From Octopus sinensis (lineage: Eukaryota), in the NCBI RefSeq assembly GCF_006345805.1, contig NC_042997.1, positions 93,496,001-93,560,000 of the forward strand: a stretch of DNA of 64,000 nt. Reading direction: 5' to 3'. The notes beneath the pieces are model-generated. The model searched no databases. It was not told where the DNA came from and worked only from the letters and a program-made list of their open reading frames with translations. This document shows, piece by piece, positions 11,601 to 60,450 of the stretch. Made by a program: the position numbers and the translations under genes. Position 1 is the stretch's first letter. The number at the start of each line of letters is the position of its first letter.

Positions 11601-14600
11601 AGTTTGCTTCTAGTTCTGCTACCAACATCCCCATTGTGTTATTACAAAATTTGTGAACATCTCATATGATAAAAACAGAATTTTCCCGTAAGTTGGGATA
11701 TGAAATTGAATTGCAAATGAGAGTCATCAACTGCCTTATCTGATGTATGATAATGCAGTTATAATGATCCTTATGCTCATTATGGTTCATAAGATCATTA
11801 TCATTATAATCATACAGAGATAAAATATCCAATTTAGAGTTCTTTCAAATAAATCTGTAAGTTAAATAAAACTCAGACTCATTGTAATTCCAAACTATAA
11901 TCCTGTTTAATTCCTTTTATTTACAGCATGACAACAGAAGAACACATCCGATTCTACATCAGTATTAAAACAGGATGGCAGGGAAAGAAATTAGAGAGAG
12001 AAGTTCGCTCGTGAGTTTAGTATTTGTTTTTACCTTTGAATTCAAGGAAATCACTATGTTGTATACTTAATTATTTGATTTCACTAAATTGTTTCATTGT
12101 TTGAACTTGTACTGTGCATTCTCACTGCTTTATTGTTCAACCTTGTTGTATTGCCAGTTGATTCTTCTGACAGTACAATCCCATCTTGGTGCATGATTTG
12201 TTTGATCTGATTACCTATCTGTTGTGTGATCACTGGTGATTATGACTGCTTTCATAGTAATTCACCTGTCATCTTCTAGACAACCCTTTAAAAGTATGAG
12301 TATATGCAATTATGAAGGCTGCTTGTTAGAGGGGTTTTTTTTTTTGGTTTTTGTGTTATTGGTTTTTGCAAATTATTACTGACACTCTCTTAGGGACTTG
12401 TAATTATTTCTCAAAAGGAAAAACAGCTCAAGCTGGATATGAGTTGTAGTATTTACAATGGCTGGCTGAAAGCTGCTACAAATTACAAGCAGACATCCAC
12501 CCTCAATGTTACCACATTACATGGCTTCTTTTAGAGTTTTCTTTCTTAGCCCTTGGCTTTACCAAGAACTAGTCAATGGTTTAACTATACAAGACAATTA
12601 TGCTTAATTCCCTGAGGTATTGTATACCAGCATATCTTTCTGGTTTTATTGTGTATTTAATTACGTAGCCTATCTACAGATAATCTACTTTCTATTGTTT
12701 TATTTCACTGTGCCGTGTTGTTCATCCAATCATTCATTTATTCGATAATGATCGTTAATTTATTCACGCACGTAAGTTCAATGATTATTCAACAAAAGAG
12801 TATAATGGATGTTTGCTTTGATGATGTGATAAAGTCTCTGCAAACCAAGTTCTCAAACTTCTTTCAAATCCATTTCTATTTCCCAAGAATATTAATTTAT
12901 GTTACAAATACTCTTGTGAAAGATAAACTTCATGACCTTCTGTCCTTCACATGAACTTGACAGCTTACATAATTTGCTCTTACCAACTAAAGTGAAAATA
13001 AATACCAATCCCACTTTACATGTAAGAGCTAGAAACCCAATTCCTGCAACTGATGGCCAATTCTAAGTCATGCTGTTTTTATTTTTACTTATGCACCCTT
13101 TTCAAGCCTAGCCAGGCTCATGGGCCTGGTTTCTCGGTTTCTATGGCGTATGTGTCCTCCCCTCCCCTCCCCAGCTGGACGGAACGCCAGTCCATTGCAG
13201 CATTACTCAAGAAACAGGAAGAAAGAGTGAGAGAAAGTTGGGGTGAAAGAGTACAACAAGGGTCGTCATCACCCCCTGCCGGACCTCGTGGAGCTTTAGG
13301 TGTTTTCGCTCAATAAACACACACAACGCCCTGTCTGGGAATCAAAACCGTGATCCGCTGACCGCAAGTCCACTGCCCTAACCACTGGGCCATTACTCCT
13401 CCTAAGTCATGCTGTGCATGACTTAAAATTCATAGACATATTTAATACATGTTTACATCACACAAAATGTATATTGTCACCATTAAGAAAATGAATATTA
13501 ATGTCTTCTTTTTTTCCATTTCCAGTATTCTAAAAGATGTTGATCTCCTACATATGCGTAATACACCTGCAAAACAACTCTCTGGTGGAATGCAAAGACG
13601 TCTCTGTGTGGCTTTAGCATTTGCTGGCAAATCTAGTATTGTTGTTCTTGATGAACCTACAGCTGGTGTAGATCCAAGTGCAAGACGAAGCATCTGGGAC
13701 CTCATTCTTAAATATAAGAATGGTTTGTAGTCTTTCATTTGATCTGTGTGTTAGCATGTGTCAATGTATGTTTGTTGTTGTGTATCAGTATTACTAAGCC
13801 CGCAATTCAGACTTGATTTGTCAGACCTAAGACCAGAGACATTCCATCCATGACCATCTGCCTTTTTTTATACATAATGTATCTAGAACTACATCGTCTA
13901 CCATGTCTTTCTTTTTTAAGGTGGGAGAATGTGAGTTAAGATACATTTTACTTTTATCTTTAGCCGATGGATTGACTAAATCGGAGTTCCTTCATTGGCT
14001 CACTGACCACGTACAGGTTTCTTTATGTGTCAGTATATGAATCTTAGTCAGTCCCATTGTACTATGTATCATGTATCATTGCAAATATCAAATAAATAAA
14101 TAAAATGTTCTTGTTATTAACATACAGAATACCAGTTCTTTTTCTTTTATCTTAAACCAAAGAAAAGAATGCATTTCTCCATCTTACTAACTTGCAACAA
14201 CTCAAACTAAGCATCATCTGTATTAACTTCATGTTCTTCTCTCAGTTTGTTAGTCTAAGAAAATCTAAGTAAGGCTCCATACATTTTGATTCTTCTTCAA
14301 ACTATGAGATTACAAAAAAGTACTTGCATAAAAAATTATTTATATATTTATATATATTTCAAGAGTACTGTAATTTACTTGAAGCATTGTAATGTATAAA
14401 TGACATTAATTCTTTTAAAAAAAGTTTTTTATTAATGAAGGTGAGAAGTTAGACAAAATATTAAGCAAAAGATGTATTACCATACATAGGTTGTTGAATG
14501 CTTCTGTTATATTTGGGGAAAGATTCCCCTTTTCAACTATAAAAAAGAAAATAATCTAAGAGTAATAACACTCGTAAATAACACTAGGAGGGGAGAAGGA

Positions 14601-20989: not shown

Positions 20990-23900
20990 TACATGCATAT
21001 ATGTATATATATGTTTATATATACATGTATGTATGTGTGTGCATATATTCATGCATATGATGTGTGTATGTATTTATTTATCTGCCTGTTTATATATATG
21101 TGTGTGTGTGTGTGTGTATGTATGTTTTTATATATATGCATGTTTATATATATATTTATGTGTATACACACACACACATAAACTTACTTATATATATTTT
21201 TTTATACATATATGTATGAGTATAAATTTCACTAAAGTGAAACAATGAAGGATGCAAACATTGGCAAATTCTTTGGACAAAGAATTCCTTTACCATGTAT
21301 GTTCTACATTGAGTTGGTGACAGTCACTTATCATTTTCACAATGAGAAATGCAATGAACCAGTAATAGTTTCATTAGAAACCTGTGGTTAACAATTCTAT
21401 TTCATTGGTTGCAATTTAATTGTGACCCCCTTCAGTCGTGAATGACCGTGGGATTGCAGCTAGAAAGTTACCCTCTGAGGCACAAGTCTATGCAAGGTTG
21501 TTTATGGATGACCAGCAGTCACCCATGCATACCAGCTTCCCTTCTCCACTCCACCGATGTTATCCGAGGGAAAGGCAAAGGCCAATACAGCTTGGCACCA
21601 GTGACGACGCAGCTTATTTATCAACATGCAAGTGGCTGAGCACTCCACAGACATGTGTACCCTTAACGTAGTTCTCGGGGAGATTTAGCATGATACAGAG
21701 TGTGACAAGGCTGGCCTTTTCAAATACAGGTACAACAGAAACAGGAAGAAAGAGTGAAAGTTATGATGAAAGAGTACAGCAGGGTTCACCACCACCCCTT
21801 GCTGAAGCCTCGTGGAGCTTTAATTGTTTTCACTCAATAAACACTCCCAATGCCCAGTCTGGGAATCGAAACCACGATCCTACGACTGCAAGTCCGCTGC
21901 CCTAACCACTGGGCCATTGCGCCTCCAAAAAATATGGAATACTTCACGAATTTGCATGTCATCCTTGCACAGGAGCCATGCTAATCTTCTCTGCATCGTT
22001 CCAATTTTAGAATATGTACTGCCATAGCTAGTACAGTTGCAATATAATATAAATAAAATAAATGTATACCAATAGTTGTATTTTTTTTAAATCATACAAA
22101 TTATTTATAATGTAAACTTTGATGCATAATTAATCCCCATAATATTTCCAAGATCATTTTTATTTTTCAGCTTTGGACATATCATCAAAAGTGAGCTATG
22201 AATCAAATAATTTTACAGCCTTCCTTACTTTGATTCAAAAACGTGCCAGTCACTACCGACGCAACTGGAAGATGGCTATCTCTGTGATTTTGCTTCCTTG
22301 TATTTTCTTTGCAATGGCTGTTGGCTTTTCCAAAATAGCACCTAAAAATGATTACAAACGTCTCCGTCTTTCCCCTGCATTATACGGACCAAACTCTTAC
22401 ATGTTTTACAAGTAAGTAACTTTGGAACATTAAAATGTTATTCTTACAATCTTAATATTTTTACTTTGTCTTAGGAGCTTCAATAATGAGGAACAAATAG
22501 ATTGATATTCTTTGTCTCCGCAAAAAGAAGGATCAGGGATAGTTTCTTCATCTTTTTACTTGTTTCCGTCATTGAACTCCAGCTATGCTGGGACACCACC
22601 TTGAAGGGTTTTAGCTGAACAAATCGATTCCAGTACTTATGGGTTTTTTTGGGGGGGGGTTAGTCATGGGTTAATTCTGGTACTTATTCTAACAATATCT
22701 TTTGCTGAGCCGTTAAGTTCTGGGGATGTAAACAAACCAGCACTAGTTATCAAGCAGAGGTGAGGTACAAACACAACTTCCACACATGTATTCACACACT
22801 CACACACTCAAACACACACACATGACAGGCTTCCTCGCAGTTTCCATCAACTGAATTCAGTCACAAGGCATTGGTTAGCCTGAAGCTATAGTAGAAGACA
22901 CTTGCCAAAGGTGCTGCATAGTGGAATTGAACTGAAAATCATGTGGATGCAAAACAAAGTGCTTAACCAGACAGCCATGCCAGTGGCAACTTTTTTTTAT
23001 TGTATTAAATATGATTTGTCTAATATCTATATTTTCAGAGATAAAGTGGGTGATTTGTATGGAAAAGATTTACTAAAATGGATCAGTCATTCACCTGGTG
23101 TTGGTACAACATGTATGTCAGACACTGCTTCAAATCTTGAGTATGTATTTTACTAAAATTTAATATATTTCAGTATTCAAAGTTAGCTGCAGCTGCTATT
23201 TGTGAAATGATATTAACTCTAAAACTTAACAATTACTACAGTCAGTTATTATTACATTTTAAAGATATCCTTTTAAAATATCATTCATATGTTCAACAAT
23301 ATTAATTTTATCAATTACTATAGTCACTATTGTTACATTTTAAACATACCCTTTAAAAAATAGCCTTCATATGTTCTTATTCTTTATAATAAATTTAATA
23401 TCATTTCTGAAACATATTTCAGAGAGCCATTTGAATGTAAACCAGCAGAGACAGTTTTCAAAAGACCCAAATATCAGAAAGACCTAATGAACAAAACTGA
23501 AAAATGTGAATGTGAAAATTTCCGGTTCAAATGTTCTAAGTATGCTTCTGGTATCCCACCAACTCAACTACAACTAAACTCAACAGATTTCCTGCAAAAC
23601 CTGAACTCAAAGTCAATGCCAGTCTCAGAGTACCTATTAGAAAGCTACATGAAATTCCGCAAGAAAAGGTATAAATAACTAGATTCTCTTTCTCATTAAG
23701 GTGGAAATTTGTTCTTCCATTTCAATAATTTTCCACAGATATTCCACCAGAAAAATTACTCTTAAACTTGTTTGCATCATCATCGTCATCATCATCATCA
23801 TCGTCGCTGTCATCGTCGTCATCATCATCGTTGTCATCAACTGCAATAGCAGTAGTATAACAGTCATCATAACTGCCATCACCATCATTATGACAACTAA

Positions 23901-28400: not shown

Positions 28401-31400
28401 ACATACCTCTACCCTTATCTCTAACCATCAGGTGCTCTCCCCTCACACTTTTATGACCTCCTTCCTCCCTCTTGATCCACTATTCCCACTGTCTCTTACC
28501 TTTTACTCATATACTCCCACCCATCCTTATATAAATGCAGAGTTGTCAGTTGTCATGTATCTTCTCTGTGACAAGACACCTCTGCTTGTCCCTGGTATAA
28601 AATCATCTTTCCACCTTCTTAAATACCCTCCCACCTCACTTAATCTCAAGGGCTTTTCCCTTTCCTCCTTGAATGAGAGTTCCAGCATTTTGAGAGGTAT
28701 GGAACCACCTCCTAGCCACTGTTGTTCCCAGGTCTACTCTGGCGTGAAGTAGTAGCACTTTTTAGGATCCCAGCTATGGGTTAACTAACATGTTAACAAT
28801 AGGAGTGAAGGATCCCTGGTTGTCATTAGAATTTCTTTCTAGGAGAAGGTAAATTGTATGTATGTATGTAAGTACGTACGTCAGTAGGTATGTGTGTATG
28901 CATGTATGTTGTGACAGTGAGATATGGATATGATAAAAATATTATTTCCATGCATCATTCAGAAACTAAATGCTAGTGTTGGTTATTATTTAATCTTGTA
29001 TGAACATACTTATGATCAAAGGCATTCCAACAATGACCATCCCATCATTTTTGTAGTGGTGGATTAGAATACTGTGCACTTGCTGGCAGCAGTAGTTTGC
29101 AATTGTGATGATGGTTATGTCAGAGATTGTTACAGTAGTAAAATATCAACACTCCATTTTGCCCTTTTGTTGGAATACACTGATTTTGTTTCAACTGATT
29201 TTAAAAATAAAAAAGAATTTAGTGATTTAACTTTGTCGTTATTAAGCTGGGGTTTGGAACTTAAGTTAACATGGAATTTTCAATATCAATCACTTTAAAA
29301 CAGGGAGATTGTATCATACAACCAGGGCCAGTTTTAGGCACATTGATATCAAAAAGGTTGTTGTGTTTTGAGTTATTCCTACCTAAAATGTCAAAATCTG
29401 TTCAGTATTTTAATGCTAATTTTAATTTTTATTTCTTTACTTTTTTGCGTAGATGGGCTTCCATACCACTTATGTACACGACAGTAAGCTTCTTCAAAGA
29501 TCCCACTACATCTTATATGATTGTTTTCTGTTTTAATATATTTTCTGGATTGTGCACAAGTGTATGTGTGTTCCTCTTAAGTCTATTCCAAGGCACACAG
29601 GTAAACAGAAAAACGTTATTTTTACATCTAACTAGAGTAGAAATTTTCATTAATTCTTTAAACGTTTAGCATTTAAACTGACCATAACTAGGTCGAATAT
29701 TCTAATTGTTTTATGTTCAAACTGGCCATGCCTAGCTTCTCACACTTACTCTACAATGTCATTGTTAAAATAGTCACATCATCATAATTTTGAAGCTACA
29801 AGATAGTAGATGATTACTTCAAAATAATGTGAATAAATAAGCATTACATTTGACAGAGTAATCTGAATTCTAAAGGGCTAAAAAAATATTTTTATTTAAT
29901 TTCAATTCTAGTATTGCGTCTTTAGATCTGGTACTTTTACAGCTGGATCATTTATTCATTGCCAATATACAATGGAAGTGCAATCTCCTGTTAGATAATC
30001 ATCTCTTAAACAGTATTTCAGTTAATGCAATTATCTTTGTTAATAATTATATTTGAATTTATCTGTATGTGTATTTATTTGCAACACTGCCTTTGCATGT
30101 CAACTATAATATTTTGTTTAGCCAGACCCAGCATTAAGCATGATCAACTCATGTTTTGAAACTGATTTATTATAAAGAATGTGAAGGTGCATGGTTCAGT
30201 GGTTAGAGTATTGGGCTTACAGTCATGAGGTAGTGGATTCGATTCCTGGACCAGGCTGTGTGCTGTGTTCTTGAGAAAGGCACTTTATTTTATGTTGATC
30301 CAGTTCACTCAGCTGTAGAAATGAGTTATGACATCACTGGTGCCAAGCTGTATTGGCCTTTGCCTGTCCCTTAGATAACATCATTAGCATGGACAGGAGA
30401 AACTGGTATGTATGGGTGACTACTGGTCTTCTATAAACAACCTTGTCCAGACTTGTACCTCTGATGGTAATTTTCTAGGTGCAATCCCATGATTATTATA
30501 AAGGGAGTCTTTTACTATAAAGAATACAAGTGTTTCTGACATCGTTTCAGGGAATTCTCTCTTGTGTTGCATGGTATTCATGACAGCCAAGAAGCTAAAA
30601 ATGCATTCACTGTTCTGCAAAGAGAGGATGCCTTGATATGACTATTGGTAATTTTCAGCACCTATTGCATAATGCAAGCATGATTTTCCATGGCAAATTA
30701 GCAGTGAATATGGCCTTTATACAGGTTAAATATGTCCAAAACATATTTGAAATTATCTAAATGTTTGCTTAAACATCTATGTTCTCATATAACTGTTATT
30801 TCTTTGTTTCTTATATTTTCCACTTAACCTCTGCTACTTGGGACAGTTATTTTTAGTACCTCTAAATTTTGAATATAAGATGATAACTTACTCTTGTTTA
30901 TGTTGAGGATTAACAATTTTTATCTCAGACTATTACTTCTTCATCTAGAAATTCATAAATCAGCTTTCCAGAATAGGAAAATTAAATTACCCTCAATAAT
31001 ATCGCTAGAGTTGGAATTCTTTAATACTTTTAAGGGGAAAATATTTAATAAAACTTCCACTTGAATTGATTAAGGCCATAGCATATTTCAAGTTTCAGAT
31101 TACAGCTGTTGCTTATATTTTTAAAAAAATTAACTCTGTTTTTTTTTTGTCTTTCTTTTGTATTATAGGCATTACAGAATGCTTACCAGATATGTAGATA
31201 TGTATTCTTGATCTTCCCACAATTCTCTCTCAGTTATGGATTAGTTTCATTGGGAAACAACCAGCTTCAAACAAGTATTTTTGCTCACTTTGGAATGGAT
31301 GTATATAAAAATCCATTTGAAATGCTGCATTGGCACATTATCTCGTTATTCATTTGTGGAATAGTCTTCTTCCTCATTACCTTATTCTTAGAAACCCGTA

Positions 31401-55744: not shown

Positions 55745-56490
55745 ATTCACAGCCACATTTCCTTTTTGTCTGGATTTCCTTTTTATCATTGTCTTGTGAG
55801 AGAATGTGTGTGTGTGTGTGTGTGAGTGTGTGTGTGCATGTACGTGTATGTATGTGTGCGTGTGTGTATGTGTGTTCGCACACACATATATTAATATATA
55901 CTAATAATAATTAAATAAATGTACATATCTAAATTATCATTAAAAATTATAAATTCAAATTTAACACTCAATAGTTATAAAGAATACAATAATATTTCTT
56001 AAATAAAAAAGTTTACTTATCTCTCGAAAAGCGTGTCATTAACTAAAACAATGAGTGAATGAATTATCCTATGTTTACCGTTAACATGGAAAATTCAATG
56101 AAGCATTACCAGGGTAGCAAATTCACATCAGAAACACGCTTGAAGCGACCTATCCACAGGTAGAAACTCCGAGTTAATGAGCAGTAATTTGTGTGTTATA
56201 GATGAATAAATAAATAAATGGAGTTGAACGAAGATGTTAATAAAATTCCTTTACTTTCGACATATGTTTCGAAGACAACATGGTTTTATTCCAAAGGAAT
56301 AAACGGTGTAAGATGCAATCTTCTCGCCCTCTCTCGCTTTCCTTCCCTGCCTCTCTCTCACCCTCTCTCTCTTTCCCCAAAACAGTCTTCTTTTCCTCTC
56401 TCTCACCCTCCCTTCCTCACAATCTCTTCCTCTCTCCTCCCTTCTCCCTTTTTCCCTCACAGCTTCTCTCTCTCTCCCCGCTACAACGGA

Positions 56491-57444
56491 ATGGACAACA
56501 TGCAAAAATTAGAGGTAAATGCAAACACTGGCATCAACAAAAGCCAGCGTAACTGGACGAAAGTAGAGCTGGAAGTTTTCATCAGAGGATGGAGCTCGGC
56601 CGACAGATCGCAACCAACTAAAAACATAGCGGCGACCCTGAAAAGCCATGGCTTTATGAGGACGTTGGCGCAAGTAGAGAGGAAGAAAAGAGAAGTCGAA
56701 AGGGCCTACACTCTCATTGCACCACACATGGCTTTGCTAAGCCAAGACCTCAAGGTGGACAAAGACAAAGAGAGAGAGATGGAAACAGGAAACACCAACC
56801 ACAGAGTGTCAACAAATGACACGCCCACTGCCACAGTCGAAGAAGGCAAGCAGGGCAAACAACAGATAGGCGGCGATGGGGAAACGGAAAATAACCACCC
56901 GGATGAAAATACCTATGCAGAAAGGAACCAGTGGACAACCGTCCAACGGAGGAAGAGAAAACAGAGAGGAACTGGGGACAAGAAAACCCAGATAACATGC
57001 AAATTCTTCCGGAATGGAACCTGCTGGCATGGAGAAACAGGGGAAGGATGCAGGTTCGCTCATCCCAGGCCCTATGGAAATTGCATCAAACCCACTCGAC
57101 CAAAATGCCTTAACCAAAACCAAGACTGAAACCAAAACCAGAACAAATACAAGCTGCCCCAGAAATATGCAGACATAGTGCGTAATGCCCCAACAAGGAG
57201 AAGGCGCACATTTGCAGAGGAAATGCAGACGGCGGCAGCAGAACAAAGAAATTTTGTGGAAATAGCAGAGAAAATTGTGGGACAACTGGCCTGGATACAT
57301 CGTCTTCAGAGCCAGGGGCACTCACAACAGCACTCAAGACCACCACAATCAAGGGACCCAGGGTGGCCACCGCTGACACCAGCCCAGGTGCCACACTGTC
57401 AGCCTTTATTGACACCCCAAATATCTCACCAGTGCTTCTGCTGA
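56491..57444 (+). pseudogene. LINE ORF1: Myb/SANT-like domain plus CCCH zinc finger, one in-frame TGA at 57127-57129
   Basis: ATG at 56491; WTKVELEVFIRGW...IAATLKSHGFMRTLAQVERKKREVERAY; CKFFRNGTCWHGETGEGCRFAH; the frame continues after the TGA into the 57178-57444 ORF. Confidence 0.75.
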
Positions 57445-60325
57445 ATGTCAGAGGTCTGGTGAAACCCACTAATATGAGTAAAATTCCTTACCTTAGGGAC
57501 TTAAGCACAAGCAACCATGCAATATGCATAGCGCTGACTGAAACACACCTGTCAAGCAGTATAGCAGATGCAGAAATACACGTACCAAAGTATACTGTTT
57601 TTCGGTCAGACAGGAAGGAAAGAACTCATGGTGGGGTTGCCCTGTACGTCCGTGAAGATGTCACACCCATAGTACTGTTGACACACTCAAACTCAGTCTG
57701 TGACACACTGATAGTACACATGAAACAACCGAAAATAGTAATATGTGTCACATATCGGCCACCAGACACCCCTAGTCATGAAGGAGTGTTTGAAGATAGC
57801 CTCAGAAGAATAGAAGAAGTCCTGGACAAACTGGACCAGGGTAACACCATTCTACTGCTGGGAGATTTTAACCTTCCGAAAGTCAAATGGCCAGATGGCC
57901 ATCTCCTCCCTGGAATGACATCACTTGAACAGAGACAGACAGAGTCCTTGTTGGCTCTCACACGCAAGTTTTTCATGGAACAAGCAGTGCTTCGGCCAAC
58001 AAGAGGTGAGAATGTCTTGGACCTCTGTTTCACAAGCAACCCGATGCTCATCCACAACATAATGGTAACACCAACAATTCTCTCAGATCACAACTTAGTA
58101 GAGGTAATGATATATGGTATGAGAGAGTTAGTTGAGACGCAGCCATTAGAAAATACCACAGGCCTATCCAGTCTAAACTTCCATAAAGCAAACTGGAAGA
58201 AGATCAACGAAGAGATCCGAAAACATGACTGGAGTGACTTCATCACCACACAAGACACCAACACACATTTCCAACATTTCATGACAACAATACAGAACAT
58301 ATGCCATAAGTTTGTCCCGGAGAAAAAAGCCAGCGGGCATAGGAACGTTATTCCCAGAGACAGGAAAATACTTATGAGGCGAAGAGCTAAGCTCTCGAAG
58401 CAACTGAATGCACGGCAGAGAAACAATGAGGGACTCCACCTGAAACTTTTTGAAACGGAAACTGCACTCAAACTTTCCTATGAGAAGGAGAGGGCAGAGA
58501 GAGAAGCCAGGGCCATAGAGAATATTAAAACAAACCCTAAAGCCTTCTTTAAATTTGCGAAAGAAACCACCTCGGTACACTGCAAGATTGGCCCACTCTT
58601 TGATAAAAAGGGCTCTCTAACTGAGGACCCCCAAGGGATAAGTGAAATACTAAAGGAACAGTATAAAAGTGTGTTCACATCCCCTCTGGGGCACATGCAA
58701 ATCACAAACCCAGAAGTTTTCTTTGATGCCACAACACTCCAAAACCAAACAACAACCATCGACCACATAGACAAAACAGAGAGGGATGTAATATCTGCCA
58801 TAGAAGAAATGAGAATAAACTCAGCTGCTGGACCAGATGGATTCCCAGCAGTCCTCCTAAAAACATGCAGGCATGCCCTAGCGGGACCACTGAAGAAGCT
58901 CTTCAGTGGTTCCTTGGCTAACGGTAAACTGCCCAGGGCGCTAAAAGAAGGCACCATATGCCCTATCCACAAAGGAGGGAGTAGAGCAGAGGCCAAAAAC
59001 TACAGGCCAGTCTCCCTGACGTCACACATAAGTAAGGTCATGGAACGAATCATCAGAAAAAAACTGATCACGTTCCTCGAAGAAACTAACCGTCTCACTG
59101 ACACACAGCATGGCTTTCGCCCAGGAAGAAGCTGCCTTACGCAGCTGTTACAACACTACGACTGGGTACTGAAACAACTACTGGATCGCTCACAGGTGGA
59201 TGTGGTATATCTCGACTTTGCGAAGGCCTTTGATAAAGTCGACCACGGAGTGATATGTCACAAATTACTCAGACTCGGCATAACAGGAAAAGTAGGTGAG
59301 TGGATACATGACTTCCTGAAGGACAGAAGCCAGATGGTTGCAGCCAATGGAGCCCTCTCGGGAAAGACACCAATAGCAAGCGGGGTGCCACAGGGCACAG
59401 TCTTGGGACCCTTGCTGTTTTTGGTGGCGCTCTCTGACATGCCCTTGGTAGCACAAACAACATCCCTCACTAGCTATGCTGATGACACAAAGGTAGCACA
59501 GGCAATCTAAAACCCAGCTGATGCTGACCTTTTACAACAAGATCTGGATGCCATATACAAATGGGCTGAAGACAACAACATGCAATTTAATGCTGGTAAA
59601 TTTCAAGCCTTACAATATCAAGCTGTAAACACATATACATTACAACACAACTATACTGGTCCAGGAGGGATCGAAATCCCAGTATCGAAATCAATACAGG
59701 ACCTGGGGATAGACATGAGTGACGATGCATCTTTTTCTTCACACATCGCGAAGGTGGCGACAATGTGCAGCCGACTCACTGGCTGGATCCTGAGGACATT
59801 CCGGACAAGAGACTGCGAGACCATGTTGACACTATGGAGGACATTTGTCCTAAGCCGCCTGGACTACTGCTCCCAACTGTGGTCACCGCATAGTGTCAAA
59901 CTAACCACAGAGCTTGAGACAATCCAAAGACATTTCACCAAGAGGATTTCCACCATGAAAGAAAAGAACTATGGGAGAGGCTTAGGGAACTCAATTTGTA
60001 CTCCTTGGAACGAAGACGAGAGAGATATGCAGTGATATACATATGGAAAATCCTGGAGGGACTAGCACCAAATTTTGGAATTGAGAGCTGTTCCAATCCC
60101 CATACAGGACGTCACTGTGTGGTGCCAAAGGTCCCGTCTTCCACATCCAGGGTAAGGAGCAGATACTGTAATAGCCTGGGGTTCAGGGGCCCTCAGCTGT
60201 TCAACAAACTGCCAAGAAAACTAAGAGATCTACATGATGCGGATGTGAACATTTTCAAAAAACATCTAGACAAGCTGCTTTCAGGATCCCAGATGAACCC
60301 ACTGCAAGGTACGAAGGTAACCTAA
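57363..60325 (+). pseudogene. LINE ORF2 (endonuclease and reverse transcriptase)
   Basis: 715 aa open to an in-frame TAA at 59508-59510, resumes in the same frame, then frameshifts near 59970 and 60290. Confidence 0.9.
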
Positions 60326-60450
60326 GGGCAGCAGCTACAAACTCTCTCTAGATCAGTGGCCAGCCACGGCAAACTGGACTTAGAGAGGGTAGCAACAAGG
60401 GCGGTGCCCCAGCATGGCCTCAGCCGGATGGCTGAAACAAGTAAAAGAGT

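Follow-up and report, generated by a model that had tools for sequence, protein, structure and literature searches.

A 64-kb window of the Octopus sinensis genome (the whole stretch of DNA analysed; coordinates are window positions unless a chromosome is named) carries on its minus strand a full-length copy of the U6 small nuclear RNA (snRNA), joined directly to a full-length short interspersed element (SINE). We consider it a U6-SINE chimeric retrocopy that arose from one event of target-primed reverse transcription, in which the reverse transcriptase (RT) switched from the SINE RNA to the 3' end of U6, and assign this reading a probability of about 0.7. Integration of the two parts in a single event is strongly supported at the locus, and junctions of the same class were identified at more than 100 other places in the genome.

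The sole Rfam match at gathering level across the 64 kb was U6 (RF00026; 22034-21928, minus strand, model positions 1-105, 103.7 bits, E 7e-26, against a gathering score of 44). The retrocopy itself (21927-22034, minus strand) is full length, with the variant 5' stem-loop GTACTAGCTATGGCAGTAC and GCAGAGA in place of ACAGAGA. It ends in six T (...CCATATTTTTT), and the very next base is the G of GGAGGCGCAATGG, that is, of the SINE start GGAGGCGCAATGGCCCAGTGGTTAGGG. The SINE (21421-21926, minus strand) is a full-length member of a family of 506-510 nt, with a degenerate tRNA-like head at 21851-21922 (box A TGGCCCAGTGG, box B GGTTTCGATTCC) and the tail end GGGGGTCACA, here without an A-tail. The composite of 614 nt is enclosed by a target-site duplication (TSD) whose 5' copy, ATTATATTGCAAC (22036-22048, minus strand), equals the 3' copy, ATTAAATTGCAAC (21408-21420, minus strand), at 12 of 13 positions; the latter directly adjoins the family-wide 3' end of the SINE. 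Only 0.14% of 20,000 random pairs of window sites with the same spacing matched over at least 13 positions with at most one mismatch, and those chance matches were mostly microsatellites. The preliminary description of this locus, which reported a full U6 copy ending in TTTTTT, fused to a SINE and flanked by a near-perfect 13-bp TSD, is borne out. A single T (22035, minus strand) separates the TSD from the first base of U6 and may be either a non-templated addition or the base at position -1, which is also t in the U6 array genes described below; in other chimeras 0-4 extra nucleotides occupy this place.

Several independent features indicate that U6 and SINE entered the genome together, as had been proposed. 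There is no TSD at the internal joint, neither part is flanked by a TSD of its own, and the 3' end of the SINE in the composite coincides with that of its family; a single pair of repeats encloses the whole, as expected of a U6 chimeric retrocopy. Measured against the array gene, the U6 part has 8 changes in 108 positions (7.4%), six of them CpG transitions and one the change from ACAGAGA to GCAGAGA; measured against the consensus of its family, the SINE part has 36 in 506 (7.1%). On these values both halves are of the same age. To obtain an empty site, the two flanks were joined with one TSD copy (junction at 200/201) and searched against the genome. Besides two self-hits, seven paralogous places with 70-78% identity aligned contiguously over the junction (query spans 129-218, 115-216, 57-215, 91-228, 128-220, 127-214 and 99-216). 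Their subject lengths were within a few bases of the query lengths, which implies that the target is present once at these sites. The insertion thus went into an older dispersed repeat, whose paralogues serve as empty sites.

The SINE belongs to a dispersed, multi-copy family with fixed 5' and 3' ends and TSDs of its own. When the 3' 236 nt were used as a genome query, the best 40 of 4556 first-look candidates were scored; all 40 (88-91% identity) stop at query position 220-227, corresponding to window position 21421 within a few bases. Among the copies fetched, 21 other full-length ones match SINE positions 1-506, start with GGAGGCGCAATGG and end with GGGGGTCACA, from which we conclude that the window SINE is a full-length family member; some of these copies carry a short (ACA)n or (A)n run after GGGGGTCACA. 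Ordinary copies have TSDs of 11-14 bp (L066, L072, L073, L083 and L085), and the 13-bp repeat around the composite is accordingly typical of the family. The SINE proper had been described as starting at GGAGG. The TSD of the copy at 13077-13402 does abut GGAGG, but GT usually precedes it in the family (G in 30 and T in 37 of 42 copies), and the window copy therefore falls 1-2 nt short of the commonest 5' end. The same copy had been put forward as a U6-free counterpart of the composite. Its TSD, TAAGTCATGCTGT, is real, but only its first ~194-215 nt are held in common, followed by another body and tail; it is an ordinary minus-strand copy of a shorter sister subfamily.

The head of the SINE resembles a tRNA to a limited degree. 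RF00005, with a gathering score of 29, reached 16.8 bits on it (E 1.5). With its threshold relaxed, ARAGORN gave a tRNA-like Arg|Ala fold for the family consensus; at default settings it found no tRNA in the window. Several further copies illustrate the modular make-up of these elements. An isolated fragment at 30319-30497 (plus strand) matches positions 312-490 of the long SINE family body. The ~300-nt body also occurs with a second type of head (family B, L005 and L007), which shows that modules have been shuffled among these SINEs. At L002 (C20:5072645) U6 is followed by the same SINE head with another tail that ends in a ~30-nt poly(A) run, and at L003 (C1:195879799) by the same head with a hairpin-module tail and an A-rich end; judged by these differing tails, one head family rides on several tail types.

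A genome-wide census of U6 3' ends was made with two complementary patterns (GAAGYRTTCCATATTTTT followed by 16 N and by H or G). It returned 298 ends matching the 18-mer (184 + 114), and none for the reversed-pattern control. Of these, 200 were listed; 27 are array genes, leaving 173 for classification by regular expressions applied to the 17 nt after the T-run, so the class counts are approximate. About 118 of the 173 listed non-array ends (~68%) are joined within 12 nt or less to a SINE or to a LINE/SINE tail module (LINE, long interspersed element). The partners comprise family C (~59; …ATAGGCGCAGGAGTGGCTG), the tail module (40), D (10), E (3), and G, A and B (2 each), and no class was assigned to ~55 ends. 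The tail module is a sequence of ~50 nt that reads GGCGGTGC[C/T]CCAGCATGGCC…. The window locus and about 118 other listed loci share one arrangement: U6 at the 5' end, with its oligo(U) end joined to a retroelement that has the same orientation.

The joints themselves vary. A query of U6 plus SINE C spanned the joint in 40 of 40 scored matches (92-99% identity), and 19 exact U6-C joints have variable linkers (AGG, AAGG, ATAGG, CTAGG, AATAGG and others). With a 101-nt query across the window joint, the same SINE head was found elsewhere after TTTTTT-AAGT-GGAGG, TTTTT-CAGT-GGAGG, TTTCCA-GATGCGC and TTTTTT-GA-GGAGG, and a related head, GAAGGCGCATGG, was also matched. TSDs flank whole composites at L004 (13/14), L006 (12/12), L013 (10/11), L019 (10/11), L021 (13/14) and L025 (14/14). 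Among these TSD-validated chimeras the 3' tails are of at least four types, and hence more than one LINE system must have made U6 chimeras. Since linkers are variable, three U6 gene variants are involved and TSDs differ, we regard the chimeras as products of independent events; joints, partners and U6 sources all vary, in keeping with recurrent formation. It had been considered that the window junction might occur only here. The exact string TTCCATATTTTTTGGAGG is indeed present at just two places genome-wide, both in the window, but as a class U6-SINE junctions occupy more than 100 loci.

The following course of events would account for the locus. A LINE endonuclease/RT would have nicked an AT-rich target (GTTGCAAT[T/A]TAAT) inside the older repeat. 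Primed there on the 506-nt SINE RNA, the RT would have copied all but 1-2 nt at the 5' end and then, rather than stopping, continued from the oligo(U) 3' terminus of a U6 RNA, presumably a transcript of the variant array at C1:141.8-142.0 Mb, up to the first base of that RNA. Joining of the ~614-nt composite cDNA to the upstream end of the target would have left the 13-bp TSD and the one extra T. Partner sequences start at the families' own 5' ends (GT+GGAGG in A, ATA+GGCGCAGG in C, AA+GGCGG in D), as expected if the RT ran off one template and jumped end to end onto the next; 5'-truncated partners are G, the tail module and some others. At some joints the T-run reaches 7-8 or more, beyond the six of the gene. 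Taken together, native-5'-end joints with extra bases, long T-runs and 5'-truncated U6 lean to template switching, which is also the explanation given for the U6/L1, U6-L2, U6-RTE, U6-Mon-1 and U6-AnolisSINE2 chimeras (Doucet 2015, PMC4476161). Three elements of this course are inferred: which RT acted, in what order it copied, and that the joint arose by switching rather than by RNA ligation.

Five points weigh against the proposed course of events. Sequence alone cannot tell template switching from a prior ligation of U6 to SINE RNA. The 5-6 T at the joint would equally be expected from mature U6 with a 2',3'-cyclic phosphate. No partner LINE with the GGGGGTCACA tail was found: all 40 scored tail matches were SINE copies, and nothing LINE-like appeared in the sequences examined. 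The head is weakly tRNA-like (16.8 bits), so a tRNA origin of the SINE is weakly indicated. Finally, the empty-site evidence comes from paralogues in this genome only and stands at the level of alignment tables.

The most serious alternative, which we nevertheless regard as unlikely, is that an RtcB-type ligase joined mature U6, with its 2',3'-cyclic phosphate, to a SINE RNA with a 5'-OH, and that the chimeric RNA was then retrotransposed by way of the SINE tail. Such ligation has been demonstrated for human U6/L1 (Moldovan 2019, PMC6789731), and the resulting DNA would look alike, with one TSD and U6 at the 5' end. The exact five T that precede the partner at many joints equal the mature U6 length. 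RtcB, on the other hand, requires a 5'-OH, as on cleaved RNA, whereas most octopus partners begin with the native 5' terminus of a SINE transcript made by RNA polymerase III (Pol III). A 5'-triphosphate is expected at such ends. The few variable extra nucleotides at native-end joints also speak against ligation, and the T-runs of 7-8 or more and the 5'-truncated U6 copies (e.g., a 17-nt remnant at 42133-42117) fit the behaviour of an RT; neither the 5'-OH requirement nor these last features are decisive. The jump from a finished SINE RNA to the oligo(U) of U6, as originally suggested, agrees with the genome-wide pattern (native 5' starts, 0-7 extra nucleotides) but keeps ligation as a competitor.

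Two independent insertions, either of a SINE into the T-run of an older U6 retrocopy or of a U6 retrocopy at the 5' edge of a SINE, were named as a formal alternative for some chimeras (Doucet 2015, PMC4476161), and T-rich sites are often favoured by LINE endonucleases. For the window locus we hold this to be very improbable: the single 12/13 TSD spans both parts and none surrounds either alone, the halves are equally old, the U6 end is not repeated in ATTAAATTGCAAC after the SINE, and the flank that precedes U6 does not recur behind it. In addition, more than 100 loci have this head-to-tail arrangement, and the orientation is the same in all of them.

An equally slim chance is left to an amplifying, U6-headed family, of which the window locus would be one copy transcribed from a master U6-SINE: snRNA-headed SINEs exist (Kojima 2015, PMC4494074) and the joint TTCCATATTTTTTGGAGG is seen twice in the window, but the exact pattern of U6 tail plus A/B head occurs just six times genome-wide in five different joints, the two copies that share a joint differ in SINE subfamily and have no common flanks, and the external U6 promoter is not carried by a retrocopy, so that we reject such a family.

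The second of these copies (42133-41860, minus strand) lies 20.2 kb from the first, and its SINE part belongs to the short subfamily. Only the last 17 nt of U6 (AGCATTCCATATTTTTT, 42133-42117) are retained, joined to GGAGGTGCAATG…, and the element adjoins a truncated antisense family-D SINE and shows no clear TSD. Local duplication or gene conversion was considered as the cause of the shared joint and discarded, as the flanks share no homology and the variants in the second head are those of the short subfamily. The second chimera is probably an independent event and its proximity coincidental.

The tail module that serves as partner in ~40 listed chimeras can be traced to a LINE in the same window. 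This element (56218-60449, plus strand) has a 303-aa ORF1-like frame and a 774-aa frame with APE endonuclease and RT domains (PF03372, PF14529 and PF00078). The module GGCGGTGCCCCAGCATGGCC-TCAGCCGGATGGCTG-AAACAAGTAAAAGAG forms its 3' end (60400-60449), with (TA)n behind it, and the same last 50 nt also end the SINE families C and G. The module is predicted to fold as two hairpins, the second of which has three variants (CAGTCAAATGACTG, CAGCTCATTAGCTG and CAGCCGGATGGCTG) with the stem kept through compensatory changes. Some U6 joints read AACAAGGGCGGTGCC, the upstream bases of the window LINE itself. The commonest short chimeras are best described as U6 joined just after the putative RT-recognition module of a stringent-type LINE/SINE, and in this they resemble the short L2 partners of platypus (Doucet 2015, PMC4476161).

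The chimeras probably drew their U6 mainly from a tandem array at C1:141834616-141960833, on the same chromosome and 48 Mb off the window, which comprises at least 27 copies (including L039-L058). Its periods are ~1.1, 1.4 and 2.5 kb, and the genes share a conserved upstream TATATAT near -30. They have a variant 5' stem-loop, GTACTAGCTACGGCGGTAC, with a UACG loop for UUCG and U-G for U-A, followed by ATATTC; these changes keep the fold of the U6 stem-loop. The window U6 carries exactly this variant, which indicates derivation from the array. Two further U6 gene types, GTACTTGCTTCGGCAGTAC and GTATTGCTTCGGCAATAC (with a TATA box upstream), are both seen in chimeras. The functional U6 genes appear to be the chromosome-1 array plus a few dispersed loci.

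In the window copy, by contrast, the ACAGAGA box is not intact, and where a functional gene would have a type-3 Pol III promoter with TATA at ~-30, the sequence is unrelated to the conserved array promoter. The promoter of U6 is external, lies upstream and is not carried along in a retrocopy; for this reason the window U6 was dead on arrival. It is a pseudogene in decay, and nothing at the locus points to a function.

Two other kinds of U6 copies were observed. Six U6 3' ends (C1:192676067, C2:60762159, C3:80175912, C3:80537977, C3:80537809 and C10:47052168) are followed by the non-SINE sequence CTGAAAT[G/A][T/C]TTTTTAT, and could represent another dispersed U6 gene family or U6 within a larger repeat. 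Four inverted partial dimers (C3:123687615-123687757, C6:2149681-2149822, C6:23487372-23487524 and C3:80537826-80537994) have antisense U6 from 107 down to ~55-66 placed head-to-head with sense U6 from ~8-9 to 107. At the first three the palindrome reaches into the flanks (7-17 nt checked). These dimers look like products of snap-back or hairpin synthesis.

The chimera had been presented as new. Full-text literature searches returned no report of U6 chimeras for cephalopods, molluscs or other invertebrates, and the matches in the genome paper on A. fangsiao concerned 'snRNA-seq' alone. The claim of novelty was nevertheless too strong: U6-SINE chimeras within one TSD have been published for platypus Mon-1 and Anolis AnolisSINE2, as 'Group IV' snRNA copies (Doucet 2015, PMC4476161). 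The octopus chimeras are a known kind of retrocopy in a new phylum, not a new kind. As in U6-Mon-1 and U6-AnolisSINE2, a 5' U6 and a SINE of the same orientation are fused at the U-tail of the former within one TSD; template switching by a LINE RT is the attributed cause, and a single genome has chimeras from several LINE clades. The differences concern the host (Mollusca versus vertebrates), the number (platypus has 40 and Anolis 16, fewer than the ~118 recognised here among the 173 ends listed) and the completeness of the copies, since octopus U6 is often full length with TSDs up to 11-14 bp, whereas platypus U6 is mostly 5'-truncated with TSDs of 1-9 bp (PMC4476161).

Other known systems resemble the octopus chimeras in part. 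The mammalian U6/L1 copies (Buzdin 2002/2003, Garcia-Perez 2007, as cited in PMC4476161) are alike in having full-length U6, an oligo(U) joint, one TSD and recurrent, independent formation; in mammals the partner is usually a variably 5'-truncated L1 with poly(A), in contrast to the full-length, tail-specific SINE without an A-tail in the window. RtcB-ligated U6/L1 (Moldovan 2019, PMC6789731) would give the same DNA product, but needs a 5'-OH on the partner, while octopus partners mostly have native 5' ends. In SINEU, with U1/U2 heads (Kojima 2015, PMC4494074), an snRNA is likewise joined to a SINE body; those are amplifying families with a fixed joint, whereas the octopus U6-SINE shows no amplification and the U6 promoter is external. 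The bi- and tripartite chimeric retrogenes of Magnaporthe (Gogvadze 2007, PMC2104539) also arise by template jumps of a LINE RT, which link small cellular RNAs to LINE or SINE copies outside mammals, but in a fungal host and with a small RNA other than U6 as the 5' partner.

Within the octopus set, family C is the commonest partner. We take its body to be MIR/CORE-like, from a CORE motif that we recognise in it, and C would then correspond directly to Mon-1. Among octopus elements, OR2 has been listed as a CORE-SINE (PMC4758252).

Overall, the findings widen the range of U6 chimeric retrocopies, so far vertebrates and fungi, to include a mollusc, in which they are frequent. The chimeras mark active LINE/SINE systems and record the behaviour of their RTs, namely 5' run-off, jumps past the 3' recognition hairpins and truncation within U6, and they bear on the question of template switching versus RNA ligation. 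They also imply that, of the 'U6 genes' to be expected from automatic annotation of octopus genomes, most are pseudogene chimeras. We tentatively propose, as a possibility that may well not hold in full, that octopus is the first invertebrate with U6 chimeric retrocopies on a mammal-like scale, involving at least three or four LINE/SINE tail classes, with joints mostly at native SINE 5' ends or just after the two-hairpin LINE module. If this is true, the natural joints of octopus, with 5'-triphosphate partner ends, would be hard to explain by RtcB ligation, and end-to-end jumping onto U6 would be ancestral and general to APE-type LINE RTs across Bilateria rather than a peculiarity of L1 or of vertebrates.

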